Below, in pieces: positions 1,126 through 25,651 of a stretch of DNA of 64,000 nt (position 1 is the first letter of the stretch; each line of letters opens with the position of its first letter). Both the position numbers and the translations under genes were made by a program. The DNA is taken from NCBI GenBank assembly GCA_964187785.1, contig OZ076415.1:57474001-57538000 (forward strand), in the 5' to 3' direction. Source of the stretch: Amphiscolops sp. MND2022 (taxonomy: Eukaryota). The notes below the pieces were generated by a model. That model did no database searches, was not told the DNA's origin, and worked only from the letters and a program-made list of their open reading frames with translations.

Positions 1126-1329
1126 CATGAATCAATTCTTTAAACGAACGAAGAATCAGCAACACGAACCTAATAACTACTTACTCGAATCGCAGATAGT
1201 CACTAAGAAGACTATCGGCTGCGAAGTGAGGCAAGCACTTCTTAAGGTTAGAGTCACCCAAGACCAAAACACTTGAGCTAAAGAAATTAAACTAATGTAT
1301 ATTGATATCCCGGAAGAGACACAGACGGA

Positions 1330-1745
1330 GTTATAATGCGAAAAGTATAGTTCACTGAATGTAATGTTTCACCAGAAATTCCAAGAAAACATGCGATTGG
1401 AACCAGTCTAGTGGAGGCTCGTGGCTACTTGAACAGGAAACACAGCTGTTCACCAGGGCTTGAATTGGTTGGGACTCAGATCTTATTACCACAAAATACA
1501 ACTACAGTGTCGTATGTAGAGGTCAATTCAACATACACATTGAGGATTCGCGCTTTGAGGCACCCTTCAGGGTGCCAATAGATTTTGCTGCTGACAAAAT
1601 ATGAATCAATCATGTAAACAAACTAAGAACAAGCAACGTGAACCAACTGAAAACTTACTCGGAGCGCATGAAGTCACTAAGACGATTCATCGCTTACGAA
1701 GCGCGGCAAGAAACCTCTGTAGACTAGAGTCACCCAAGTTATCAG
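1330..1745 (-). pseudogene. SGNH/GDSL hydrolase pseudogene, subunit A (representative copy; no block V found)
   Basis: LGDSS (GDS at 1734-1726), a 68-nt GTAAGT..GTCAG intron (1658-1591) at the same position as in subunit B, then KIYWHPEGCLKARILNVYVELTSTYDTVVVFCGN followed by a frameshift. Confidence 0.75.
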
Positions 1746-1792
1746 GCTAAGGAACGAACAAAAACATTCAATTAACAGATTGAATTATTCTT

Positions 1793-2363
1793 TCAAACAT
1801 TCGACAGGAATGATATACCGAGTTCAACATTGAGGTGAACACCGTCAGCTTCAAAAGGATCATATGGTTCAATTTCCGGTGGAATAACATAAGAAAGTGA
1901 GAGATGTTCATATAGAAGTGTTTTAGTGCTTTGCATCACAACCCTTTCAACATCGGGTCTTTGAAGCAAGCCAATATTATTAACAGTTGTATAAAGAATG
2001 CGAAGTTCAAGCTCAAATTTGAAATTGCAGAGGCTCGTGGCTACTTCAACAGCAGACTCGGCAGTTAACCACGGTTTGAATGTGTGGAGATTCAGATCAT
2101 TATTGCCAGAAAACACAACTACAGTCGTATGAAGAGGCCCATTCAAGATCTTTAATGAAGAATCTCGCTCTGAGGCACTTTTCAGGGTACCAATGGATAT
2201 TGCTGCTGAAACAAAGATGAATCAATTATTTAAACGAACGAAGAACCAGCAACACGAACCCACTAACCACTTACTCGAATCGCAGATAGTCACTAAGAAG
2301 ACTATCGCTTGCGAAGTGAGGCAAGCACTTCTTCAGGTTAGAGTCACCCAAGACCAAAACTCT
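1793..2363 (-). pseudogene. SGNH/GDSL hydrolase pseudogene, subunit B (representative copy; repeated in every array unit)
   Basis: Block I VLVLGDSN (GDS at 2348-2340), a 69-nt GTAAGT..TTTCAG intron (2274-2206), then IHWYPEKCLRARFFIK.LE.ASSYD, a frameshift, block III TVVVF(C/S)GNNDL and block V ADGVHLN (~1849-1832). Confidence 0.85.
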
Positions 2364-5300
2364 TGAGCTAAAGAAAATAAACTAATGTATATTGATATCC
2401 CGGAAGAGACACAGACGGAGTTATAATGCGAAAATATTAGTTACTGAATGTAATGTTTCACCTGAAATTCCAAGAAAACATGAGATTGGAACCAGTCTAG
2501 TGGAGGCTCGTGGCTACTGGAACAGGAAACACAGCAGTTCACCAGGGCTTGAATTGGTTGGGCCTCAGATCTTATTACCACGAAATACAACAACAGTGTC
2601 GTATGTAGAGGTCAATCCAAAATACACATTGAGGATTCGCGCTTTGAGGTAGCCTTCAGGGTGCCAATAGATTTTGCTGCTGACAAAATATGAATCAATC
2701 ATGTAAACAAACTAAGAAAAAGCAACGTGATCCAACTGAGAACTCACTCGGAGCGCATGAAGTTACTAAGACGATTCATCGCTTACGAAGCGCGGCAAGG
2801 AACCTCTGTAGACTAGTGTCACCCAAGTTATCAAGCTAAGGAACGAACAAAAACATTCAATTAACAGATTGAATTATTCTTTCAAACATTCGACAGGAAT
2901 GATATATACCGAGTTCAACATTGAGGTGAACACCGTCAGCTTCAAAATGATCATATGGTTCAATTTCCTGGGGACTAACATAAGAAAGTGAGAGATGTTC
3001 ATATAGAAGTGTTTTAGTGCTTTGCATCACAACCCTTTCAACATCGGGTCTTGGAAGCAAGCCAATATTTTTAACAGTTGTATAAAGATTGCGAAGTTCA
3101 AGCTCAATTTTGAAATTGCAGAGGCTCGTAGCTACTTCAACAGCAGACTCGGCAATTAACCACGGTTTGAATGTGTGGAGATTCAGATCATTATTGCCAC
3201 AAAACACAACTACAGTCGTATGAAGAGGCCAATTCAAGATACTTAATGAAGAATCTCGCTCTGAGGCACTTTTCAAGGTACCAATGGATATTGCTGCTGA
3301 AAAAAAAATGAATCAATTATTTAAACGAACGAAGAATCAGCAACACGAACCTACTAACCACTTACTCGAATCGCAGATAGTCACTAAGAAGACTATCGCT
3401 TGCGAAGTGAGGCAAGCACTTCTTCAGGTTAGAGTCACCCAAGACCAAAACACTTGAGCTAAAGAAAATAAACTAATGTATATTGATATCCCGGAAGAGA
3501 CACAGACGGAGTTATAATGCGAAAAGTTTAGTTACTGAATGTAATGTTTCACCAGAAATTCCAAGAAAACATGAGATTGGAACCAGTCTAGTTGAGGCTC
3601 GTGGCTACTTGAACAGGAAACACAACAGTTCACCAGGGCTTGAATTGGTTGGTCCTCCGATCTTATTACCACAAAATACAACTAAGTGTCGTATGTAGAG
3701 GTCAATCCAACATACACATTGAGGATTCGCGCTTTGAGGCACCCTTCAGGGTGCCAATAGATTTTGCTGCTGACAAAATATGAATCAATCATGTAAACAA
3801 ACTAAGAACAAGCAACGTGAACCAACTGAAAACTTACTCGGAGCGCATGAAGTTACTACGACGATTCATCGCTTACGAAGCGCGGCAAGGAACCTCTGTA
3901 GACTAGAGTCACCCAACTTATCAGGCTAGGGAACGAACAAAAACTTTCAATTAACAGATTGGATTATTCTTTCAAACATTCGACAGGAATGATATATACC
4001 GAGTTCAACATTGAGGTGAACACCGTCAGCCTCAAAAGGATCATATGGATCAATATCCTGGGGACTAACATAAGAAAGTGAGAGATGTTCATATAGAAGT
4101 GTTTTAGTGCTTTGCATCACAACCCTTTCAACATCGGGTCTTGGAAGCAAGCCAATATTTTTAACAGTTGTATAAAGATTGCGAAGTTCAAGCTCAATTT
4201 TGAAGTTGCAGAGGCTCGTGGCTACTTCAACAGCAGACTCGGCAGTTAACCACGGTTCGAATGTGTGGAGATTCAGATCATTATTGCCACAAAACACAAC
4301 TACAGTTGTATGAAGAGGCCAAATCAAGATACTTAATGAAGAATCTCGCTCTGAGGCACTTTTCAGGGTACCAATGAATATTGCTGCTGAAAAAAGATGA
4401 ATCAATTATTTAAACGAACGAAGAACCAGCAACACGAACCTACTAACCACTTACTCGAATCGCAGATAGTCACTAAGAAGACTATCGCTTGCGAAGTGAG
4501 GCAAGCACTTCTTCAGGTTAGAGTCACCCAAGACCAAACACTTGAGCTAAAGAAAATAAACTAATGTATATTGATATCCCGGAATAGACACAGACGGAGT
4601 TATAATGCGAAAAGTTTAGTTACTGAATGTAATGTTTCACCAGAAATTCCAAGAAAACATGAGATTGGAACCAGTCTAGTTGAGGCTCGTGGCTACTTGA
4701 ACAGGAAACAGCAGTTCACCAGGGCTTGAATTGGTTGGTCCTCAGATCTTATTACCACAAAATACAACTAAGTGTCGTATGTAGAGGTCAATCCAACATA
4801 CACATTGAGGATTCGCGCTTTGAGGCACCCTTCAGGGTGCCAATAGATTTTGCTGCTGACAAAATATGAATCAATCATGTAAACAAACTAAGAACAAGCA
4901 ACGTGAACCAACTGAAAACTTACTCGGAGCGCATGAAGTTACTACGACGATTCATCGCTTACGAAGCGCGGCAAGGAACCTCTGTAGACTAGAGTCACCC
5001 AAGTTATCAGGCTAAGGAACGAACAAAAACTTTCAATTAACAGATTGGATTATTCTTTCAAACATTCGACAGGAATGATATATACCGAGTTCAACATTGA
5101 GGTGAACACCGTCAGCCTCAAAAGGATCATATGGATCAATATCCTGGGGACTAACATAAGAAAGTAAGAGATGTTCATATAGAGTGTTTTAGTGCTTTGC
5201 ATCACAACCCTTTCAACATCGGGTCTTGGAAGCAAGCCAATATTTTTAACAGTTGTATAAAGATTGCGAAGTTCAAGCTCAATTTTGAAGTTGCAGAGGC

Positions 5301-8300
5301 TCGTGGCTACTTCAACAGCAGACTCGGCAGTTAACCACGGTTCGAATGTGTGGAGATTCAGATCATTATTGCCACAAAACACAACTACAGTTGTATGAAG
5401 AGGCCAAATCAAGATACTTAATGAAGAATCTCGCTCTGAGGCACTTTTCAGGGTACCAATGAATCTTGCTGCTGAAAAAAGATGAATCAATTATTTAAAC
5501 GAACGAAGAACCAGCAACACGAACCTACTAACCACTTACTCGAATCGCAGATAGTCACTAAGAAGACTATCGCTTGCGAAGTGAGGCAAGCACTTCTTCA
5601 GGTTAGAGTCACCCAAGACCAAACACTTGAGCTAAAGAAAATAAACTAATGTATATTGACATCCCGGAATAGACACAGACGGAGTTATAATGCGAAAAGT
5701 TTAGTTACTGAATGTAATGTTTCACCAGAAATTCCAAGAAAACATGAGATTGGAACCAGTCTAGTTGAGGCTCGTGGCTACTTGAACAGGAAACAGCAAT
5801 ACACCAGGGCTTGAATTGGTTGGTCCTCAGATCTTATTTACCACAAAATACAACTAAGTGTCGTATGTAGAGGTCAATCCAACATACACATTGAGGATTC
5901 GCGCTTTGAGGCACCCTTCAGGGTGCCAATAGATTTTGCTGCTGACAAAATATGAATCAATCATGTAAACAAACTAAGAACAAGCAACGTGAACCAACTG
6001 AAAACTTACTCGGAGCGCATGAAGTTACTACGACGATTCATCGCTTACGAAGCGCGGCAAGGAACCTCTGTAGACTAGAGTCACCCAAGTTATCAGGCTA
6101 AGGAACGAACAAAAACTTTCAATTAACAGATTGGATTATTCTTTCAAACATTCGACAGGAATGATATATACCGAGTTCAACATTGAGGTGAACACCGTCA
6201 GCCTCAAAAGGATCATATGGATCAATATCCTGGGGACTAACATAAGAAAGTAAGAGATGTTCATATAGAGTGTTTTAGTGCTTTGCATCACAACCCTTTC
6301 AACATCGGGTCTTGGAAGCAAGCCAATATTTTTAACAGTTGTATAAAGATTGCGAAGTTCAAGCTCAATTTTGAAGTTGCAGAGGCTCGTGGCTACTTCA
6401 ACAGCAGACTCGGCAGTTAACCACGGTTCGAATGTGTGGAGATTCAGATCATTATTGCCACAAAACACAACTACAGTTGTATGAAGAGGCCAATTCAAGA
6501 TACTTAATGAAGAATCTCGCTCTGAGGCACTTTTCAGGGTACCAATGAATATTGCTGCTGAAAAAAAGATGAATCAATTATTTAAACGAACGAAGAACCA
6601 GCAACACGAACCTACTAACCACTTACTCGAATCGCAGATAGTCACTAAGAAGACTATCGCTTGCGAAGTGAGGCAAGCACTTCTTCAGGTTAGAGTCACC
6701 CAAGACCAAAACACTTGAGCTAAAGAAAATAAACTAATGTATATATCGATATCCCGGAAGAGACACAGACGGAGTTATAATGCGAAATGTTGAGTTACCG
6801 AATGTAATGTTTCACCAGAAATCCCAAGAAAACATGAGATTGGAACCAGTCTAGTGGAGGCTCGTGGCTACTTGAACAGGAAACACGGCAGTTCACCAGG
6901 GCTTGAATTGGTTGGGCCTCAGATCTTCTTACCACAAAATACAACTACAGTGTCGTATATAGACGTCAATCCAACATACACATTGAGGATTCGCGCTTTG
7001 AGGCACCCTTCAGGGTGCCAATAGATTTTGCTGCTGACAAAATATGAATCAATCATGTAAACAAACTAAGAACAAGCAACGTGAACCAACTGAAAACTTA
7101 CTCGGTTCGCATGAAGTTACTAAGACGATTCATCGCTTACGAAGCGCAGCAAGCAACCTCTGTAGACTAGAGTCACCCAAGTTATCATTCTAAGGAACGA
7201 AGAAAAACATTCAATTAACAGATTGAATTATTCTTTCAAACATTCGACAGGAATGATATATACCGAGTTCAACATTGAGGTGAACACCGTCAGCTTCAAA
7301 AGGATCATATGGTTCAATTTCCTGAAGACTAACATAAGAAAGTGAGAGATGTTCATATAGAAGTGTTTTAGTGCTTTGCATCACAACCGTATCAACATCG
7401 GGTCTTGGAAGGAAGCAAGCTAATATTTTTAGCAGTTGTATAAAGATTGCGAAGTTCAAGCTCAATTTTGAAATAGCAGAGGCTCGTGGCTACTTCAACA
7501 GCAGACTCGGCAGTTAACCACGGTTTGAATGTGTGGAGATTCAGATCATCATTGCCACAAAACACAACTACAGTCGTATGAAGAGGCCAATTCAAGATAC
7601 TTAATGAAGAATCTCGCTCTCAGGCGCTTTTCAGGGTACCAATGGATATGGCTGCTGAAAAAAAATATGAATCAATTATTTAAACGAACGAAGAACCAGC
7701 AACACGAACATACTAACCAATTACTCGAATCGCAGATGGTCACTAAGAAGACTATCGCTTGCGAAGTGAGGCAAGCACTTCTTCAGGTTAGCGTCACCCA
7801 AGACCAAAACACTTGAGCTAACGAAAATGAACTAATGTATATTGATATCCCGGAAGAGACACAGAGGGAGTTATAATGCGAAAAGTTTAGTTACTGAATG
7901 TAATGTTTCACCAGAAATTCCAAGAAAACATGAGATTGGAACCAGTCTAGTGGAGGCTCGTGGCTACTTGAACAGGAAACACAGCAATTCACCAGGGCTT
8001 GAATTGGTTGAGCCTCAGATCTTATTACCACAGAATACAACTACAGTGTCGTATGTAGAGGTCAATCCAACATACACATTGAGGATTCGCGCTTTGAGGC
8101 ACCCTTCAGGGTGCCAATAGATTTTGCCGCTGACAAATAATGAATCAATCATGTAAACAAACTAAGAACAAGCAACGTGAACCAACTGAAAACCTACTCG
8201 GAGTGCATGAAGTCACTAAGACGATTCATCGCTTACGAAGCGCAGCAAGCAACCTCTGTAGACTAGAGTCACCCAAGTTATCAGGCTAAGGAACGAAGAA

Positions 8301-11300
8301 AAACATTCAATTAACAGATTGAATTATTCTTTCAAACATTCGACAGGGATGATATATACCGAGTTCAACATTGAGGTGAACACCGTCAGCTTCAAAAGGA
8401 TCATATGGTTCAATTTCCTGAAGACTAACATAAGAAAGTGAGAGATGTTCATATAGAAGTGTTTTAGTGCTTTGCATCACAACCGTATCAACATCGGGTC
8501 TTGGAAGGAAGCAAGCTAATATTTTTAGCAGTTGTATAAAGATTGCGAAGTTCAAGCTCAATTTTGAAATTGCAGAGGCTCGTGGCTACTTCAACAGCAG
8601 ACTCGGCAGTTAACCACGGTTTGAATGTGTGGAGATTCAGATCATTATTGCCACAAAACACAACTACAGTCGTATGAAGAGGCCAATTCAAGATACTTAA
8701 TGAAGAATCTCGCTCTCAGGCGCTTTTCAGGGTACCAATGGATATGGCTGCTGAAAAAAAATATGAATCAATTATTTAAACGAACGAAGAACCAGCAACA
8801 CGAACATACTAACCAATTACTCGAATCGCAGATATTCACTAAGAAGACTATCGCTTGCGAAGTGAGGCAAGCACTTCTTCAGGTTAGAGTCACCCAAGAC
8901 CAAAACACTTGAGCTAAAGAAAATAAACTAATGTATATATCGATATCCCGGAAGAGACACAGACGGAGTTATAATGCGAAATGTTGAGTTACCGAATGTA
9001 ATGTTTCACCAGAAATCCCAAGAAAACATGAGATTGGAACCAGTCTAGTGGAGGCTCGTGGCTACTTGAACAGGAAACACGGCAGTTCACCAGGGCTTGA
9101 ATTGGTTGGGCCTCAGATCTTCTTACCACAAAATACAACTACAGTGTCGTATATAGACGTCAATCCAACATACACATTGAGGATTCGCGCTTTGAGGCAC
9201 CCTTCAGGGTGCCAATAGATTTTGCTGCTGACAAAATATGAATCAATCATGTAAACAAACTAAGAACAAGCAACGTGAACCAACTGAAAACTTACTCGGT
9301 TCGCATGAAGTTACTAAGACGATTCATCGCTTACGAAGCGCAGCAAGCAACCTCTGTAGACTAGAGTCACCCAAGTTATCATTCTAAGGAACGAAGAAAA
9401 ACATTCAATTAACAGATTGAATTATTCTTTCAAACATTCGACAGGAATGATATATACCGAGTTCAACATTGAGGTGAACACCGTCAGCTTCAAAAGGATC
9501 ATATGGTTCAATTTCCTGAAGACTAACATAAGAAAGTGAGAGATGTTCATATAGAAGTGTTTTAGTGCTTTGCATCACAACCGTATCAACATCGGGTCTT
9601 GGAAGGAAGCAAGCTAATATTTTTAGCAGTTGTATAAAGATTGCGAAGTTCAAGCTCAATTTTGAAATAGCAGAGGCTCGTGGCTACTTCAACAGCAGAC
9701 TCGGCAGTTAACCACGGTTTGAATGTGTGGAGATTCAGATCATTATTGCCACAAAACACAACTACAGTCGTATGAAGAGGCCAATTCAAGATACTTAATG
9801 AAGAATCTCGCTCTCAGGCGCTTTTCAGGGTACCAATGGATATGGCTGCTGAAAAAAAATATGAATCAATTATTTAAACGAACGAAGAACCAGCAACACG
9901 AACATACTAACCAATTACTCGAATCGCAGATGGTCACTAAGAAGACTATCGCTTGCGAAGTGAGGCAAGCACTTCTTCAGGTTAGCGTCACCCAAGACCA
10001 AAACACTTGAGCTAACGAAAATGAACTAATGTATATTGATATCCCGGAAGAGACACAGAGGGAGTTATAATGCGAAAAGTTTAGTTACTGAATGTAATGT
10101 TTCACCAGAAATTCCAAGAAAACATGAGATTGGAACCAGTCTAGTGGAGGCTCGTGGCTACTTGAACAGGAAACACAGCAATTCACCAGGGCTTGAATTG
10201 GTTGAGCCTCAGATCTTATTACCACAGAATACAACTACAGTGTCGTATGTAGAGGTCAATCCAACATACACATTGAGGATTCGCGCTTTGAGGCACCCTT
10301 CAGGGTGCCAATAGATTTTGCCGCTGACAAATAATGAATCAATCATGTAAACAAACTAAGAACAAGCAACGTGAACCAACTGAAAACCTACTCGGAGTGC
10401 ATGAAGTCACTAAGACGATTCATCGCTTACGAAGCGCAGCAAGCAACCTCTGTAGACTAGAGTCACCCAAGTTATCAGGCTAAGGAACGAAGAAAAACAT
10501 TCAATTAACAGATTGAATTATTCTTTCAAACATTCGACAGGGATGATATATACCGAGTTCAACATTGAGGTGAACACCGTCAGCTTCAAAAGGATCATAT
10601 GGTTCAATTTCCTGAAGACTAACATAAGAAAGTGAGAGATGTTCATATAGAAGTGTTTTAGTGCTTTGCATCACAACCGTATCAACATCGGGTCTTGGAA
10701 GGAAGCAAGCTAATATTTTTAGCAGTTGTATAAAGATTGCGAAGTTCAAGCTCAATTTTGAAATTGCAGAGGCTCGTGGCTACTTCAACAGCAGACTCGG
10801 CAGTTAACCACGGTTTGAATGTGTGGAGATTCAGATCATTATTGCCACAAAACACAACTACAGTCGTATGAAGAGGCCAATTCAAGATACTTAATGAAGA
10901 ATCTCGCTCTCAGGCGCTTTTCAGGGTACCAATGGATATGGCTGCTGAAAAAAATATGAATCAATTATTTAAACGAACGAAGAACCAGCAACACGAACAT
11001 ACTAACCAATTACTCGAATCGCAGATATTCACTAAGAAGACTATCGCTTGCGAAGTGAGGCAAGCACTTCTTCAGGTTAGAGTCACCCAAGACCAAAACA
11101 CTTGAGCTAACGAAAATAAACTAATGTATATTGATATCCCGGAAGAGACACAGAGGGAGTTATAATGCGAAAAGTTTAGTTACTGAATGTAATGTTTCAC
11201 CAGAAATTCCAAGAAAACATGAGATTGGAACCAGTCTAGTGGAGGCTCGTGGCTACTTGAACAGGAAACACAGCAATTCACCAGGGCTTGAATTGGTTGA

Positions 11301-14047
11301 GCCTCAGATCTTATTACCACAGAATACAACTACAGTGTCGTATGTAGAGGTCAATCCAACATACACATTGAGGATTCGCGCTTTGAGGCACCCTTCAGGG
11401 TGCCAATAGATTTTGCCGCTGACAAATAATGAATCAATCATGTAAACAAACTAAGAACAAGCAACGTGAACCAACTGAAAACCTACTCGGAGTGCATGAA
11501 GTCACTAAGACGATTCATCGCTTACGAAGCGCAGCAAGCAACCTCTGTAGACTAGAGTCACCCAAGTTATCAGGCTAAGGAACGAAGAAAAACATTCAAT
11601 TAACAGATTGAATTATTCTTTCAAACTTTCGACAGGGATGATATATACCGAGTTCAACATTGAGGTGAACACCGTCAGCTTCAAAAGGATCATATGGTTC
11701 AATTTCCTGGGGACTAACATATGAAAGTGAGAGATGTTCATATAGAAGTGTTTTAGTGCTTTGCATCACAACTGTATCAACATCGGGTCTTGGAAGGAAG
11801 CAAGCTAGTATTTTTAAGTTGTATAAAGATTGCGAAGTTCAAGCTCAATTTTGAAATTGCAGAGGCTCGTGGCTACTTCAACAGCAGACTCGGCAGTTAA
11901 CCACGGTTCGAATGTGTGGAGATTCAGATCATTATTGCCACAAAACACAACTACAGTTGTATGAAGAGGCCAAATCAAGATACTTAATGAAGAATCTCGC
12001 TCTGAGGCACTTTTCAGGGTACCAATGAATATTGCTGCTGAAAAAAGATGAATCAATTATTTAAACGAACGAAGAACCAGCAACACGAACCTACTAACCA
12101 CTTACTCGAATCGCAGATAGTCACTAAGAAGACTATCGCTTGCGAAGTGAGGCAAGCACTTCTTCAGGTTAGAGTCACCCAAGACCAAAACACTTGAGCT
12201 AAAGAAAATAAACTAATGTATATTGATATCCCGGAAGAGACACAGACGGAGTTATAATGCGAAAAGTTTAGTTACTGAATGTAATGTTTCACCAGAAATT
12301 CCAAGAAAACATGAGATTGGAACCAGTCTAGTTGAGGCTCGTGGCTACTTGAACAGGAAACAGCAGTTCACCAGGGCTTGAATTGGTTGGTCCTCAGATC
12401 TTATTACCACAAAATACAACTAAGTGTCGTATGTAGAGGTCAATCCAACATACACATTGAGGATTCGCGCTTTGAGGCACCCTTCAGGGTGCCAATAGAT
12501 TTTGCTGCTGACAAAATATGAATCAATCATGTAAACAAACTAAGAACAAGCAACGTGAACCAACTGAAAACTTACTCGGAGCGCATGAAGTTACTACGAC
12601 GATTCATCGCTTACGAAGCGCGGCAAGGAACCTCTGTAGACTAGAGTCACCCAAGTTATCAGGCTAAGGAACGAACAAAAACTTTCAATTAACAGATTGG
12701 ATTATTCTTTCAAACATTCGACAGGAATGATATATACCGAGTTCAACATTGAGGTGAACACCGTCAGCCTCAAAAGGATCATATGGATCAATATCCTGGG
12801 GACTAACATAAGAAAGTAAGAGATATTCATATAGAGTGTTTTAGTGCTTTGCATCACAACCCTTTCAACATCGGGTCTTGGAAGCAAGCCAATATTTTTA
12901 ACAGTTGTATAAAGATTGCGAAGTTCAAGCTCAATTTTGAAGTTGCAGAGGCTCGTGGCTACTTCAACAGCAGACTCGGCAGTTAACCACGGTTCGAATG
13001 TGTGGAGATTCAGATCATTATTGCCACAAAACACAACTACAGTTGTATGAAGAGGCCAATTCAAGATACTTAATGAAGAATCTCGCTCTGAGGCACTTTT
13101 CAGGGTACCAATGAATATTGCTGCTGAAAAAAAGATGAATCAATTATTTAAACGAACGAAGAACCAGCAACACGAACATAGTAACCACTTACTCGAATCG
13201 CTGATTGTCACTAAGAAGACTATCGCTTGCGAAGTGAGGCAAGCACTTCTTCAGGTTAGAGTCACCCAAGACCAAAACACTTGAGCTAACGAAAATAAAC
13301 TAATGTATATTGATATCCCGGAAGAGACACAGACGGAGTTATAATGCGAAAAGTTTAGTTACTGAATGTAATGTTTCACCAGAAATTCCAAGAAAACATG
13401 AGATTGGAACCAGTCTAGTGGAGGCTCGTGGCTACTTGAACAGGAAACACATCAGTTCACCAGGGCTTGAATTGGTTGAGCCTCAGATCTTATTACCACA
13501 AAATACAACTACAGTGTCGTATGTAGAGGTCAATCCAACATACACATTGAGGATTCGCGCTTTGAGGCACCCTTCAGGGTGCCAATAGATTTTGCCGCTG
13601 ACAAATAATGAATCAATCATGTAAACAAACTAAGAACAAGCAACGTGAACCAACTGAAAACCTACTCGGAGCGCATGAAGTCACTAAGACTATTCATCGC
13701 TTACGAAGCGCAGCAAGCAACCTCTGTAGACTAGAGTCACCCAAGTTATCAGGCTAAGGAACGAAGAAAAACATTCAATTAACAGATTGAATTATTCTTT
13801 CAAACATTCGACAGGGATGATATATACCGAGTTCAACATTGAGGTGAACACCGTCAGCTTCAAAAGGATCATATGGTTCAATTTCCGGGGGACTAACATA
13901 AGAAAGTGAGAGATGTTCATATAAAAGTGTTTCAGTGCTTTGCATCACAACCCTTTCAACATCGGGTCTTGGAAGCAAGCCAATATTTTCAACAGTTGTA
14001 TAAAGATTGCGAAGTTCAAGCTCACTTTTGAAACTGCAGAGGCTCGG

Positions 14048-14780: not shown

Positions 14781-16952
14781 TCATTCGCTCCAATTCTGAA
14801 ATAACGGTGTGTAAGCCATAGACGCGAAAACCTTTGTACTAGGGATGAGATAATGCCGACTGCGAAGATGTCCCGTGCCGCATTCGATAAGAGAAAACCG
14901 ACAGTCCTCAGCTACAGAAGTGAAGCGGTCCTCGAAATTTTTCTCTTCTGAGAATGCAACAGCGTGTTTGTCGCAAAAGTAAATTATCCACAACATGACT
15001 CAAACTTTTAACCGTTCCTTGGACTGAATTCAGTAAAAAATGATTGGCGGACTCGAATCCAAAAGCCGAATTCCTCCAGATTGGCCCTTTACGTCTAACT
15101 TGATCGCAAAGATGTCTCAGAGAATGAAAATTAAAACTTTGTGAATCCTTGCCATAAAGATTCACGAAGTCTAGCTGGAACCTTTCGATCAGGTTTGGGG
15201 CTTCGTTTATATTTTCCGTTGAAACCTTTCAGAAATAACAGCCTTTTAGCGACAGACAATTGATTACACGATTGATGATACTTTTCTTGAACGAAATCTT
15301 TCAAGCAGTAACTGCCGAAGTAAAAAAGAAAAAGCTTGAAATCTCGAGCTTTCCAAAATAATATTTCTGACAGCAACTTGGGACGGCCCTGTGCACATCG
15401 AGGTGCTTTGACACCTTTCAACCGTTTCCCCATTGATGTAGTGTTCCGTTTTGCAGTCGAAGCTAATAGCGCTGTGATGATTGATTTGGCACAACCCAAA
15501 AACACCTGGTGCATAGCATCGATTGGAACATCGTCACGTATGCTGAACAGTTCGTCTATGAACCAGCGTCCTTTAATACCTCTGACTATTTCATTTTTGC
15601 CTTCAGCAACACTAGCATCTTTCAAAAGTTCATCTTTGTGGCGTTGAATGATTTCCTCATCACAAGGATATAAGTGACGATGATTCTCATGAAAACCACG
15701 AGTGTAGCAATAGATGCACCTATAAAGAAGTTTTCTAAACTCGTTGTGTTGGCGGTTTTTCTTTCACGCAAAACCAATTGACAAAAAAGGTGTCAGAGAA
15801 AAACGGGTCATATGTTTGAGAGAAAAAAAGGTCAGTTTAGGCACAGTGCCAAATGTTCAAGCAGAAATTTTGCTTTACAGTGGAGTTGTTTATATTTCGA
15901 TGTTTCCCAACGAATGTCGTGATCTGAGACACTACCCTTTCTGAGCTTGCAGATGACAGCCAACCCGAGCATTCCACATTATTTTTTAAGAGAAAGTCGG
16001 TCAGTTGAAAGTTAAATTTATATAGATAACTTACCCATAATATCCGTTGAACTGGACAACATTGAGTGAAGGTGCTTTCGCTATCATGTCCTATATGAAA
16101 TCTTTCACTTCAACGTTGAAATGTTTCGACAACAAACTGCTGTATACCCCGAGGGAAATGCCACTCAATTCTCGTCTTATTATTGGATCAACATTCGAAA
16201 AGTTGGGTTTTGTGCTGCCTTTCCACAATGCGACCTGCATCATAATGTGTGAAGCTGTTCTCCGGATACGTGGCATGTTATCAATAAGAACCCAGAAAGG
16301 CCAAAACACTTTTTTCGATGATCGAAACGGTGTCGCACCATCAGTGTTTAGGAAGATAAAGGTTTTGTCACCACACAAAACATCTTCATTTCGCTCAATA
16401 TTTATCATTTCCCCCCTTGGACTTTAGATCTCGAAACCATCTGCGACGTTCACAGACCTTCGATGACACATGTCTGACAGGTCATTATTAGGTTTTGGGA
16501 TAACTAACTTGAGTTCACAGAGCTCTCGAACAGCACTATCTGCGAGTCTATGACGTACCGCGAAGTCGCAAAGTTTTTTTCCGCAAATGTTCAACCGTAA
16601 TGTCTGACTTTTCAAACAGTACCAGCTCATCGGAAGAACTGTCGAAAATGTTCTGACGGTCCGTTTCCTGACAGTTCGTTTCCTGTGGTATAGTGAACTC
16701 CAAAAAACTGGAGAGGTGCAACGGTGTTGAACATCGAGCGTTTGGTATCGGGTTAAAGGCTGCACTGCTAGAAGATGTTGGTTCTTCACTTTCACAAAAT
16801 TCGTTATCGCTCAACTCACCAATGGGTATTTCAATCTCGTCGGAAGAAACCTGATCGGAGTCCGAACTGTTTTTACAAAATAATGTATTGCTCGAAGTCG
16901 ACTGTCTAAGTTTTTTACCACGACTAGTAGCATATCGTCCGGAAACACGCAT
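14781..16952 (-). pseudogene. CACTA/EnSpm-type (Tnp2/Transposase_21-like) DDE transposase, multiply frameshifted
   Basis: Motifs occur in canonical order: FAVRHRLADSAVREL; IFLNTDGATPFRSSKKVFWPFW..VALWKGSTKP; CIYCYTRG..YP; RGIKG..VPIDAMHQVFLGCAK; WKARDFKLFLFYFG; LYGKDSQSFNFHSLRHLCDQVRRKGPIW..SAFGFES. Confidence 0.88.
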
Positions 16953-17099
16953 TAAAGAATGATCTTGTTGTTGTTCTAGTGATGTGAAAGTATTCGAAAG
17001 TCGTTTTCTGAACGTCCTAGACTTCCGTTTTGCTGCCGCGGAACTTTCAATTCGGAAGGTCCCTTTCCAGCTAAATTTTTCGCTTCTGACCTTGTTCGA

Positions 17100-17675
17100 C
17101 TACAGAGGACTAACGTGCCCTGGCCATGAAATTGGACATTGGGACAGACAGTTGATATTGTATTCGCCGAAGGTACTTAAGACCGTACTTTACAGTAATT
17201 TCCTCACTTTTTGTGAAAGAACGCAGTGTTTTCGAAGTTATTATATTATTCTCGCTGCGTACATAGAGACAATTGGGGAAGCACGAGTGGTTAACGAAAG
17301 ACAACGGTCCTAGCATTAATTCTTCGCCTCTCCTCAGGAAAACTGACACATTAGCATCCTCTGGAAGATCTTCCTTCTCTTGAAATTCTGCCAAAATCCC
17401 TTTAACAGGAATTTCAGTTCTTGCATGAATGTCAGACAAAGCGAAAACCCCTAAATTAGTAAACTTTTGCGGTGGTAAGTAATCGACATGTAGAATTTCG
17501 AAACTTGGTAAGGTCTTTTGTATTCTTGCCTCAAATTGTTTATCAGAGTGGAATTTATATTCTGACACCTCCCAGGCTCCAGAACTTTGTTCGACTTGAC
17601 GACATCCGAATCAATTGCTTCTCTAGTCGCCACTGCATCTGCCAGTGCTCATTGCCTCCAAGTGAAGGTGCTCAT
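17100..17675 (-). pseudogene. Suv4-20/KMT5B-like SET-domain histone methyltransferase, intronless, frameshifted
   Basis: FEIL..GILAEF..LMLGPLSFVNHSCFPNC..TLRSFTKSEEITVKYG. After a 1-nt shift it reads FGEYNINCLSQC (post-SET), and upstream is DAVATREAID..SNKV. This parallels the SUV4-20 pattern LWLGPAAFINHDCRPNC..EEISCYYG..FFGENNEFCEC. Confidence 0.85.
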
Positions 17676-18770: not shown

Positions 18771-20488
18771 TTACATCGTTTCACTGTTGTTTGTTGGCGG
18801 AGTGGACAGGGTCGGTTTCTTCTTCGGTAATTTGGTCCTGTTCTTCATTTCCGTCCCAAGCCCGTTCACAATGTTGCGGGACTTCACATAGCACCCGGAA
18901 TAAAGGCAAACGCACTCTGAACAAAAAATGGAAATAGTTTTTCTGTCAAAGCAAAACGACTGTTAGGTATGAACAAAGCTCTCGATCGAGGAGGCTGGAA
19001 TCATCTAACCCCTGAATAACGCTTTTCGCGTTGGGGTCATTGGACTGCGAGGCACATCCATGAACTCTAAGTCCTTGCCGGGGGACATGATGTTAATAAT
19101 CAGTTCTTTCCTGGACCACAGCTTTCGAGCAATGTTTCTCCCGTACAAAGTGGGAACATCACCAGGACAATCCAGGAGATCGTCTCCGTTGAACATTTTG
19201 CGAACACGCTCCCCGATGGATGCAGGAGTATAATGGTGGTTTTTTTGCATCCACTCCATTATCAGAGCTTGAGTTTTCGCCTAACAAGAAACTTATACAT
19301 AACATTTATTCAACATAACACCTTGTTACAGCGATAGCGACAAGTTCTGCAATGAAGCACTTAAAGCTTATCTCAACTTTCACTCTCAGAAAGACCAGTC
19401 TTGCACTGAGAAAGGTACTTTTATCAACCTAACCAGGAACTCACAGATGAGGCAATAAGTCTGTTAATACTCAAGGGACAACCTTAAAAACCTTTACAAA
19501 AAATTGAAAGGTTAAAACTTAAAGTGTTAAACTGCTGAATGGTGGAAACCGAAACACCAAATTGAAGCCCGAACATGGAACCTGTATATTCATGTGATTT
19601 TTCAAATTCCCTGATACCTTACAAAGAACTTTTAACTGACAACCGGGTTATGATGTATGTCGTGAGTGTTGACTAGACGTAATGCATATTAACAAAATAG
19701 GTAAATGACATGTGAAACGTTTTTCAACCAATGCAGCCAGTGCTGCGTTGATATCTCGATAAGTCCTACACTAACAATTAACGATATGTCTTTGACATTC
19801 TTACGCCAACGAGTATCGCAGGCGTCATGAGCACATCGCCATTTTGTTCTCCATCCGCATCATAGAGCGAAGCATTTGTTCCATCAATTCAACCTGGAAA
19901 AGCAATTGTGCGAAGAAATACCCTAATTAGACTTCAGTTGAATTTCAATCGCATACCACTTTAGAATTGTCCACAGCAGTTGCTTGCGGAGTAGTCAAAG
20001 TCGTATCCAAACACTTCCGTTTGGGTTCGGGCTCCAAGATATCATCCAACTCATTATCTGAGAATGAGTGGTCTGCTTGATGCTGTGACAGGGGACTCTG
20101 GAATTTATCAGTCTCTACTTGGCGATCGGCCCCGAGTAAAATGTTGGAGAGGTTGATATCCTCACCCGATTCAAACCTCTCCATGAGTTCGGAGGCTTCT
20201 TTTTTCTTGCGTTTGACGTCGGCATTGGTTCCAACGAACCAAACTTTTCCCGCGAATATTCCTTTCTTACAACGAATGTTCAATTGATCCGACTTCGCTA
20301 CACCTATGCGCTCTACTAAATCCTATCCCACGATACTCTGTGACTTGTAGTCGAGCGTCACAAAGGTATCATCTTGCGGGAATCGAACGATGACGGCTCG
20401 GTCTTTATCACGGAACTCTTGGAAGCCGCGGTTCGGGCGAGTCAAGCCGAAATAAGGTTTCAGTGTTGTAATCGATAATGCTTTTCAT
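18771..20488 (-). pseudogene. Spliced BEN/DUF4806-like domain gene (transposon accessory protein)
   Basis: Exons ~20488-19957, ~19890-19805, 19280-19010 and 18916-18771 have GT-AG borders. The spliced C-terminus reads PTLYGRNIARKLWSRKELIINIMSPGK..PRSPMTPTRKALFR|ECVCLYSGCYVKSRNIVNGLGTEMKNR. Exon 1 has an in-frame TAG and a frameshift. Confidence 0.65.
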
Positions 20489-21790
20489 CTCAAGGAAAAC
20501 TTTTCAGGACTTTCAGTTGTTTCCAAAAGAAATTGCTTTGGTACCCACAACAAACTTGAAATCCAGATACTGGAAACATTTCTAGTATCAATAAAATATT
20601 CTCCTGAGCGGCACAAAGTTTCTGCTTTAGGGGAACAAAAACCATTACCTTCAATACAGTGATAATATCAGACAATGAATCAAATAACTGCAAATAAGGG
20701 TGCATTTCGTGCTCGGAAACAGCTTCAACAGTTCGGGTAGAGCGTTTTGGGCCACATGGGATTGCGTTTTTTGAACCTCAGCCCTCTTGAGAAAAGCGCA
20801 ATTTCGACTATAACGTCGAAATTCTGATATTGCGCACCAATTTCCATCCTCTGATTCATCCTTAGTAAAATTCAATATACTTCGGAAATACCGGCAAAAG
20901 TTCGGATATAGAGTGCTGGGACAAATGGGAGCACTTGTTTTCGAACCTCCGCCGTAGTGAAACGTATTTTACTTTGAATATAACGTCAACAATTTGCATA
21001 TAGCATTTCTAGTTTTTGAACATCCTTAGAATACCTAGGATACCTTTTTGGTGAAACGGGTCAAAAATTCGGATTCTATTGGATAATGTTATTGGAGGAT
21101 AAAACCTTTGATAAAACCTATAATTGAAGGATAAAATCTATAATAACGGAACTCTTGGAAGCCGCGGTTCGGACGAGTCAAGCTGAAATTAGGTTTCAGT
21201 GTTGTAATTGATAATGCTTTTCATCTCAAGGAAAACTTTTCAGGACTTTCAGTTGTTTACAAAAGAAATTGCTTTGGTACCCACAACAAACTTGAAATCC
21301 AGATACTTGAAACGTTTCTAGTATCAATAAAATATTCCCCTGAGCGGCACAAAGTTTCTGCTTTGGGGGAACAAAAACCATTACCTTCAATACAGTGATA
21401 ATATCAGACAATGAATCAAATAACTGCAAATAAGGGTGCATTTCGTGCTCGGAAACAGTTTCAACAGTTCGGGTAGTGCGTTTTGGGCCACATGGGATTG
21501 CGTTTTTTGAACCTCGGCCCTCCTGAGAAAAGCGCAATTTCGACTATAACGTCGAAATTTTGATATTGCGCACCAATTTCGATCCTCCGATTCATCCTTA
21601 GTAAAATTCAATATACTTCGGAAATACCTGTAAAAGTTCGTATATAGAGTGCTGGGACAAATGGGAACACTTGTTTTCGAGCGTCCGCCGTAGTGAAACG
21701 TTTTTTACTTTGAATATACGTCAACAATTTGGATATAGCATTTCTAGTTTTTTGAACATCCACCTTTTTAGTGAAACGTGTCAAAAATTC
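20413..21790. repeat. ~736-bp tandem duplication covering the 5' region of the BEN gene
   Basis: GGAACTCTTGGAAGCCGCGGTTCGG occurs at ~20413 and ~21149, followed by ~600 bp of high identity. Paired ORFs 20490/21226 and 20651/21387 are near-identical. Confidence 0.92.
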
Positions 21791-23695: not shown

Positions 23696-24338
23696 AATTC
23701 CACAAATAGTGATTTTAGACGTTATTCCACAAAATTAGTGATTTTAGACGTTATTTCAAAATATGGGTATTGTAGTCGTTATTCCAGTACAATGTACAAT
23801 ACAATCTTTTTAGATCTTATTCTACCCGAATAGATTTATTTTAGAAGTAATTCCACAAATATAGTGATTTTAGACGTTATTCCCCAAAAAAGCGATTTTA
23901 GACGTTATTCCGCAAAAACTGATTTTGGACGTTGTTCTACCAGACTATGGGTATTTTAGTCGTTATTCCAGAGAATTAGTGTTTTTAGATCTTTCTCGAC
24001 CCAAATATATTTATTTTAGACGTTATTCCACCAATATAGTGATTTTAGACGTTATTCCCCAAAAAAGCGATTTAGACGTTATTCCGTAAAAACAGTGGTT
24101 TTAGACGTTATTCTACCAGATTATGCGTATTTTAGTCGTTATTCCAGAAAAATACAGTGTTTTTAGATCTTATTCGACCTAAATACTGTTATTTTAGACG
24201 TTATTCCACAAACATAGTGATTTTAGACCTTATTCCTCAAATACAGTGATTTTAGACGTTAATCCACAAAATTAGTGTTTTAGAAGACGTTATTTCATCA
24301 AACTTTGGGTACTTTAGTCGTTAATCTAGTGAAATACA
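23696..24338. repeat. Minisatellite, ~30-bp unit (consensus ATAGTGATTTTAGACGTTATTCCACAAA), about 21 copies
   Basis: TTTTAG(A/T)CGTTATTCC is directly repeated throughout the interval. Confidence 0.93.
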
Positions 24339-25651
24339 GCATTTGGGCCATATTTTAACAAAATAACGTAATTTCGGTCCTTTTTTATCAGTAGTCAGAT
24401 CAGAAATGAAATACAGTATCTAAAAATTTTGACTCAAACTTTCGGATGAGAATTTTTCATTTTTAAAAATTTTGTTGGTTTTTTTCATTAAAAAACATCG
24501 AGTTTTTCAATTCATGCGACAAGCTCCAGCAAACATGATCGCAAAAACCTATAATAATCTTTTTTGTTAGTTTTCATGACTTTTTTATGGTTTTTGGCGC
24601 TGAAAAATAATTCGAAAAGTTTGAAATTCGAACCAATCAGAACAGTCGTATTTTGATATTCCATTCTAAAGTAGTCCCTAAAAAATCGTATAGAACTTCT
24701 ATATGAAAATGATTTTGTTTTTTCTAAACACGGAAAGGAAAGCACGAAACGCCTTTTCCAAAAGTGTGCATGAAAAAAAAATTTCCATCAAACAAAGTTC
24801 CAGTACTACGAATTTGTTTGCCACACTGGCAATTTGTTTTCGTTTCTTGTAGCGTCTGTGCTTACGAAATTAGACGCTTTGCCCACAAAAACCTACAAAA
24901 CTTCGCGGGTTATTCGGTTTTGATTTTCTTGATGCTGCTCTGAAAACCCGCTAAATTGTAGAGAAATCTTGATAAATACCTGAAAAATTAGTGACGCAGC
25001 ATGAAAATATTGAGCATGAAAAGTTCTCTGAGCAGCTCCATTACGATACACATCCCGGTAAAATGGATTTCAGTCACGCAGCGTAATCTGTGTAATCCGT
25101 AAAATGGTCATTCAGCGTAAGTTGTCAAGACGGTCTATGCCTGAACGGTGTAGCTGTGTCAACGCGCGTAAAGGAAAATAGTGTAAACTAGTCAAGGCAC
25201 GTAGTTTGTGAAAAGTGGAAGTTAGTCCAAAAATACACTTTTGGGTTTTGTAGGTTTTTGTGGAGTCCAAAAAACCTAATAAATTAGCCTTGCAACCTAT
25301 AAAAGCATGTAAAACTTTTGAGCACTTTCAACTAGGGCGACTGATCTGACTGCTATATGAGCACGAAGATAGTGTTTCGACAGTTTTTTGTGAGTTTTTC
25401 ATTTGAAAAAGTTCTGAGCATATTTTGAAAACTTTTCGCTTTTTGAGCATTAAGTGCGGCGCCGACTTGAGGCGTTTCTGATTGTTCTGATTGCTCTTTG
25501 TCATTCTTCGAGAACTTCAAGTTGATAAGTGGTAAATTGGTTATACATTACGGCATACAATTTGATGATTTTTCTACACTCAGAAGTTGAACGCTACTGC
25601 CTAGAATTATGCAGTTTTTGGGCATTGTGAAGTCCGTCTTTTGGTTTTTAG

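Follow-up and report, generated by a model that had tools for sequence, protein, structure and literature searches.

The minus strand of the window, by which we mean the whole 64,000-nucleotide stretch of DNA analysed here, encodes a SET domain at 17675-17100, with transposase coding sequence directly downstream. The question raised by this locus is what a domain of histone methyltransferase type is doing in front of a transposase. An earlier note, made from the DNA letters alone, had described an independent, intronless Suv4-20-type H4K20 methyltransferase gene that lies beside a transposase start. We consider it very probable that the feature is instead what remains of the N-terminal module of a transposase gene, now decayed, in a large Mirage-like element (17-25 kb) from the CMC (CACTA-Mirage-Chapaev) group of DNA transposons. 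The interest lies in the SET-transposase family to which this copy belongs and not in the window locus. The parts of the element that were recognized in the window are listed below in the 5' to 3' direction of the element.

25322..25337, minus strand: 5' terminal inverted repeat (TIR), CCCTAGTTGAAAGTGC, with one mismatch to the TIR consensus from four copies that are 98-99% identical
23697..25020, minus strand: 5' subterminal tandem repeats, in units of ~175-180 bp composed of 29-30 nt sub-repeats
19005..21540, minus strand: remnants of an upstream accessory gene, partly duplicated, collinear with the upstream ORFs of two intact elements
17100..17675, minus strand: decayed Suv4-20-like SET module, with a short N-terminal helical region, SET core and post-SET motif
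16034..17099, minus strand: rest of exon 1, with a variable Ser-rich linker and the N-terminal transposase core (NTDG...FNGYYG)
15725..16033 (approximate), minus strand: remnant of the single intron, where the window is collinear with the intron of the closest intact relative (locus L036) at 85% DNA identity
14516..15724, minus strand: exon 2, encoding the C-terminal transposase region, now split among at least four frame segments
1130..14047, minus strand: SGNH-like tandem array of 13 kb, directly after the transposase

Conservation with the termini of the intact 17-21 kb relatives extends ~40 bp beyond the 5' TIR of the window. For the 3' terminus of the element, no matching TIR was found within the window. 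The subterminal repeats are 72-82% identical to those of an intact relative, with TRF periods of 29, 60 and 175, and can be likened to the subterminal repeats of CACTA elements, which makes them candidate transposase-binding sites. The 29-30 nt sub-repeats (ATTCCACAAAA..TAGTGATTTTAGACGTT) tile the 5' subterminal region at window positions 23697-24284. The upstream accessory gene has at least two exons (window 19005-20445, minus strand; L038 2201-3473, minus strand) and is kept in two sublineages that are only 48% identical in their transposase. A BEN-like identity, raised by a weak match in L043, was not borne out: the gene had no Pfam match even at an E-value of 10. The upstream part of the element also contains an internal duplication of ~740 bp (20651-20875 and 21387-21611, minus strand, together with neighbouring ORFs), seen as paired, near-identical ORFs and as duplicate BLAST matches to an intact relative.

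On the other side of the transposase, the SGNH-like array is collinear with two to three units of the 3' internal repeats of L036 (8248-8706 and beyond), and is therefore probably part of the same element. By this collinearity it looks like an amplified internal 3' region of the transposon rather than an independent host satellite; its units had no Pfam match. Elsewhere in the genome, at least 15 SET copies riddled with stops follow one another in tandem up to a transposase fragment (G000:C1:26441729-26490373), and a separate tandem array consists of transposase fragments (G000:C1:95876685-95891399). Internal pieces of SET-transposase elements thus seem prone to amplify into satellites.

Within the SET module of the window, a minus-strand ORF at 17110-17568 (152 aa) matches the Pfam SET family (E 1.8e-10; 41.6 bits against a cut-off of 22.4). 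Three-frame translation recovered all of the core, N-terminal and post-SET motifs that the earlier note had quoted: the SET core motifs (the NHSC..PN block and EEITVKYG) share one frame, the post-SET FGEYNINCLSQC follows just downstream in a neighbouring frame, and the D..AT....D...K-type motif ADAVATREAIDSDVVKSNK is found upstream of the core in the same second frame as FGEYNINCLSQC. In an alignment to an intact relative, the ATG of the module is at 17675, codon 9 is a stop, and frameshifts occur near 17520, 17172 and 16579. The first two of these are the reason why the post-SET motif had rightly been called frameshift-recovered, and the absence of introns from the SET part was likewise borne out. 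The post-SET tail is scrambled and contains a stop, and two more in-frame stops occur in the N-terminal part of the transposase. In exon 2, tblastn returned pieces in frames -1, -2, -3 and -1, each 74-85% identical to ORF2 of L036; over the transposase part, the amino-acid identity with L036 is 82%. With stops and frameshifts throughout, the window copy is a pseudogene, an inert relic, and therefore cannot do anything itself.

The relationship between the two coding regions becomes clear in intact relatives, where the SET module is either exon 1 of a spliced gene or lies inside single ORFs of 1001-1064 aa. L036 is 85% identical to the window in DNA over 3.8 kb. Its ORF1 (551 aa) opens with the SET module and continues stop-free into the N-terminal core of the transposase, and a canonical GTAAGT...TAG intron, predicted from sequence, joins ORF1 to exon 2; this predicted splicing restores a conserved GCIYC (CxxC) motif, followed by a His-rich HENHRH. 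A search for sequencing runs returned DNA runs only, all from one study, and in their contigs the intron is uninterrupted and shows no splice joint. The same layout is seen in a second sublineage, 48% identical in protein, with the exact intron of its locus L042 not placeable by eye. Single ORFs that combine the SET module with DUF1258/Transposase_21 include P0036 (1006 aa), P0038 (1038 aa) and P0039 (1064 aa). P0039 matches DUF1258 with 40.3 bits against a cut-off of 33.1, and P0036, P0050, P0018 and others have sub-threshold matches to both families. For the window copy and its closest relatives, the Transposase_21 matches are weak, and in these relatives the transposase matches fall short of the curated Pfam cut-offs. 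Mirage transposases make up the Pfam family DUF1258, a close relative of the Transposase_21 family from CACTA/EnSpm elements (PMC3985635). The 3.3-kb Logan contig that carries P0038 has no poly(A) tail and therefore cannot be called a transcript.

When the 1.07-Gb genome was searched with the SET ORF, 150 of 438 candidates were scored as matches, many of them in long open frames. At 21 of the 24 best SET matches, a transposase match was found 2-3.5 kb downstream on the same strand, and genomic open frames of 934 and 1001 aa match a full-length SET-transposase protein almost end to end. The copy count and the search for intact copies that had been proposed for this locus thus yielded many copies, with long intact SET-transposase ORFs among them. 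In intact relatives, then, the transposase polypeptide has the SET module as its N-terminal domain, and there is no separate methyltransferase gene beside a transposase start. The transposase ORF start that had been placed ~150 bp downstream of the SET part does have its methionine (16952), but this residue is internal to the frame of the intact copies. The predicted product would be one polypeptide of ~950-1060 aa, in which a Suv4-20-type SET module at the N-terminus is followed by a Ser-rich, fast-evolving linker and then by a predicted DDE-type transposase. The SET module of such a fusion would be compact, with two N-flank helices, the SET core and a post-SET CxCPH..H.

Assignment of the SET module to the Suv4-20 type was approached by sequence, by fold and by signature residues. 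Among solved structures, phmmer returned SUV420H2/SUV420H1 as best matches at an E-value of 1e-15, with KMT2C as the next family at 1.7e-5. When eleven copies were combined into a profile and compared with 1.84 billion representatives, transposable element (TE)-type proteins came first; among the named matches that rank just below these and were looked up are KMT5B, KMT5C and fungal Set9. An NCBIfam search gave no match. A structure model built from a 62-sequence alignment (pLDDT 90.2) replaced one built from 11 sequences (pLDDT 54.7). The 16 best Foldseek matches of this model are all SUV420H1/H2 chains, the best with a TMq of 0.75-0.77 over the full length, and other SET domains reach a TM of ~0.43 and at most 0.45, in a comparison where the folding alignment included canonical KMT5 sequences that may pull the model towards the KMT5 fold. 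Measured on the SUV420H side, TMt is 0.62-0.68, with a shorter N-flank in the model.

Suv4-20 enzymes have an unusual active site, described for mouse Suv4-20h2, in which Ser161 hydrogen-bonds the lysine, Phe191 lines the methyl pocket and Tyr217 forms the channel (PMC3874154). Equivalents of these residues are present in 62/62, 58/62 and 62/62 of the aligned sequences, respectively, and all three are still legible in the broken copy of the window. In the Suv4-20 subfamily, a post-SET cluster, CxCxxC, completes a zinc site together with the NHxC cysteine. In the 62-sequence alignment, this NHxC cysteine and the first two post-SET cysteines never vary, and where the third would stand the transposase-linked clade has a conserved PH..(F/Y)H pattern. 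All three approaches assign the SET module to the Suv4-20 (KMT5B/C, Set9) type, as originally proposed, and none of the comparisons assigned it to another SET subfamily. Of the 62 Suv4-20-like sequences, 24 have Ser or Ala at the histidine of NHxC (alignment A2, column of L002 residue 127); NHSC is intact in the sublineages of the window. The lineages that have replaced this histidine may have altered or lost cofactor chemistry and may be non-catalytic.

Selection on the fusion was assessed between sublineages, and pN/pS is reported rather than corrected dS because synonymous sites are saturated (pS 0.72-0.94). The SET module gave a pN of 0.19-0.30 and a pN/pS of 0.23-0.35, the N-terminal core of the transposase 0.26-0.31 and 0.33-0.37, and the linker 0.40-0.53 and 0.56-0.74. 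With pN/pS values like those of the transposase, the SET module has therefore been held as tightly as the transposase through diversification of the family. The dN/dS comparison suggested for this locus, run here as pN/pS, indicates that the SET module is under purifying selection.

What the module might do can be proposed from its relatives. Canonical Suv4-20 enzymes convert H4K20me1 to H4K20me2/3. The SET module of intact copies would be a working lysine methyltransferase, most likely one that converts H4K20me1 to H4K20me2, and the transposase would deliver this methylation in cis to nucleosomes at transposon ends or target sites. The role that we prefer, tentatively, is that the SET module supports the transposition reaction through chromatin. 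One option is tethering or target choice on H4K20-marked chromatin. Another is that local H4K20me2 would draw repair of the 53BP1 type, by end joining, to the excision break; the analogy here is with SETMAR, whose SET domain reportedly assists in end-joining repair. That the element silences itself is less likely than such support of transposition. The earlier note had put forward self-silencing, competition with the host enzyme and remodelling of insertion sites as effects that a transposon-borne copy could have. In its fullest form, the proposal is of a diversified, recently mobile clade of animal transposons in which the transposase is itself an active H4K20 methyltransferase, writing H4K20me2/3 at its own ends or at integration/excision sites for repair, targeting or its own chromatin state. 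We regard this as possible, though somewhat doubtful as a whole. If true, it would describe a mobile element with a histone writer inside its recombinase.

The residues of the SET module bear directly on a second reading, in which the module has been kept as a non-catalytic chromatin reader or tether that binds the H4 tail or the nucleosome and steers the transposase, much as chromodomains steer some integrases to particular chromatin. The replaced NHxC histidine in 24/62 sequences and the lost third post-SET cysteine of the Mirage-linked clade are in its favour, and constraint across lineages fits binding as well as it fits catalysis. The window's sublineages, however, retain NHSC together with the counterparts of Ser161, of Tyr217 and of Phe191 in the pocket, all of them residues of catalysis and product specificity rather than of tail binding. 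We judge a purely reading or tethering module, the main rival to our preferred role, to be rather unlikely.

In the second sublineage, four copies that are spread over three chromosome-scale contigs share 98-99% identity across 12-16 kb. The four near-identical copies are 17-21 kb long and differ mainly in the number of internal tandem repeats. All four end in an imperfect 16-bp TIR (14/16 matching positions), CCCTAGTCAAAACTGC and CCCTAGTTGAAACTGC, so that the element termini read CCCTAG...CTAGGG. Target site duplications (TSDs) of 2 bp flank 4/4 copies (AA, TA, TA and AT). TSDs of 2-5 bp are found in the CMC-related group (PMC12730594). An inverted-repeat scan of the foreign locus L053 revealed no termini. 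At least one sublineage has been recently mobile, and the idea that the SET sequence is transposon-borne, which the earlier note had put forward, is upheld by its collinearity with the transposase at 21/24 best loci and by elements with TIRs and TSDs.

The same data weigh on the possibility that the SET-transposase genes are domesticated host fusions of the SETMAR kind that have grown in number by duplication. SETMAR does illustrate that a SET-transposase fusion can be a host gene, according to the account in PMC8704517, and many long intact ORFs persist in the genome. Against this, the copies lie at unlinked sites in units that are bounded by TIRs and 2-bp TSDs and are 98-99% identical; diverged sublineages number in the dozens, and many copies, that of the window included, have decayed; and internal pieces have been amplified into arrays. 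Where a SETMAR-type gene would be single-copy, immobile and syntenic, we found many TIR/TSD-bounded, near-identical copies. Domestication as a general explanation is very unlikely, although single lineages could have been domesticated.

The origin of the SET module was examined in a maximum-likelihood tree, in which 48 TE-type SETs split from vertebrate KMT5B/C and fungal Set9 (SH-aLRT 94; the tree is unrooted, has no outgroup and does not include this animal's own KMT5B). A single canonical host KMT5B-like exon is present on another contig (G000:C12:41458710-41459054, minus strand). This exon is 57% identical to residues 134-246 of shark KMT5B, and the TE-type copies reach at most 47%. On this evidence, the TE-type SETs appear to be a sister-like subfamily of KMT5B/C and Set9 rather than orthologues. 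The remaining explanation, a processed pseudogene or recently captured fragment of host KMT5B that lies beside a transposase by chance, would account for the intronless and broken SET part of the window, but it is hardly credible given that 21 of the 24 best loci show this arrangement, that the two parts share a reading frame in intact copies, that the host has a distinct exon with the identities just given, and that the 48 TE-type SETs separate in the tree. The single pseudogene nested in the host Suv4-20 lineage, which the earlier note had named as the case that would undo its reading, was not what the tree, the host exon and the many transposase-linked copies revealed.

SET-Mirage proteins were also found in at least five public data sets (ERZ25074608, ERZ25071359, ERZ27289571, ERR13770114 and ERR12075130). 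No sequence in this genome is more than 35-36% identical to P0036 or P0038, and the architecture therefore probably extends beyond a single organism. In the Atlas, only weak (0.76) transposase clusters were retrieved, and in the nearest Atlas Transposase_21/DUF1258 clusters, which come from rotifers, arthropods, nematodes and fungi, no SET domain was found among the common Pfam families. Other Suv4-20-like SETs occur in long, multi-copy ORFs that have no Mirage transposase match. Examples are L054 8001-10421 (P0080, 806 aa, in a cluster of 14) and ORFs of 783, 831, 655 and 418 aa in G000. These families keep CxCxxC and form a separate clade. At L054, genes for an integrase (rve) and for a double-jelly-roll capsid-like protein are found at a distance of 6-8 kb, which may point to a Polinton/Maverick-like setting.

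To our knowledge, transposons that carry chromatin enzymes are rare, and a SET-transposase fusion is an uncommon architecture for a mobile element. The family offers a natural system for the role of a histone methyltransferase in cut-and-paste transposition, be it in choosing targets, in mending the break left by excision or in controlling the chromatin of the element itself. There is also a practical consequence for annotation, as the more than 140 scored Suv4-20-like SET matches in this genome, out of over 400 candidates at first look, would otherwise be mistaken for expansion of a host gene family.

Among known systems, SUV420H1/H2 (KMT5B/KMT5C) and Set9 are the best matches in sequence and fold, ten orders of magnitude ahead of other SET domains. 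The TE SET shares with them an N-flank motif ending in (S/T)HK, a SET core with NHxC, the Ser161/Phe191/Tyr217 equivalents and a post-SET region that begins YFGxxNxxCxC. It differs in an N-flank of two helices, where the corresponding region of KMT5B/C is ~100 residues longer, and in the PH..H pattern that replaces the third post-SET cysteine of the KMT5B/C CxCxxC. The C-terminal heterochromatin-targeting region of KMT5B/C is absent from the TE SET, and the transposase stands in its place.

Among CMC elements, the family resembles Mirage (DUF1258) and CACTA/EnSpm (Transposase_21) transposons in its transposase, which exceeds the DUF1258 cut-off in P0039, and in having short TIRs, subterminal repeats and TSDs of 2 bp; its CxxC and His-rich motifs may correspond to those that follow the second acidic residue in such transposases. 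The termini are CC...GG here, in contrast to the usual CA...TG, and the elements are very large, with internal tandem arrays. Our literature search, which left Repbase Reports outside its scope, returned no report of a Suv4-20-type SET fused in frame to a Mirage/CACTA-type transposase. SET genes have been described in HarbingerS, in MuDR elements of Phytophthora, in some Helitrons and in the red-algal Plavaka PAG2 (PMC12730594; bioRxiv 10.1101/2025.02.11.637652). These carriers are mobile elements too, and their SET is likewise taken to act on host chromatin. They have accessory or incorporated SET genes and belong to oomycetes and algae, whereas the SET described here is an in-frame, Suv4-20-type domain of the transposase in an animal-like genome.

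The closest parallel in architecture is SETMAR (Metnase), which also unites a SET lysine methyltransferase and a DDE-type transposase in one polypeptide, and whose biology is still debated. SETMAR is a single domesticated primate host gene that arose when a transposon landed beside a host SET gene, whereas the fusions described here reside in multi-copy, apparently mobile elements. SETMAR pairs an H3K36-directed SET domain with a transposase of the Tc1/mariner type; here the SET is of the Suv4-20 type and the transposase is Mirage-like. Should the proposed activity hold, the family would be a natural counterpart of SETMAR with an independent origin, drawn from another SET subfamily and another transposase superfamily.
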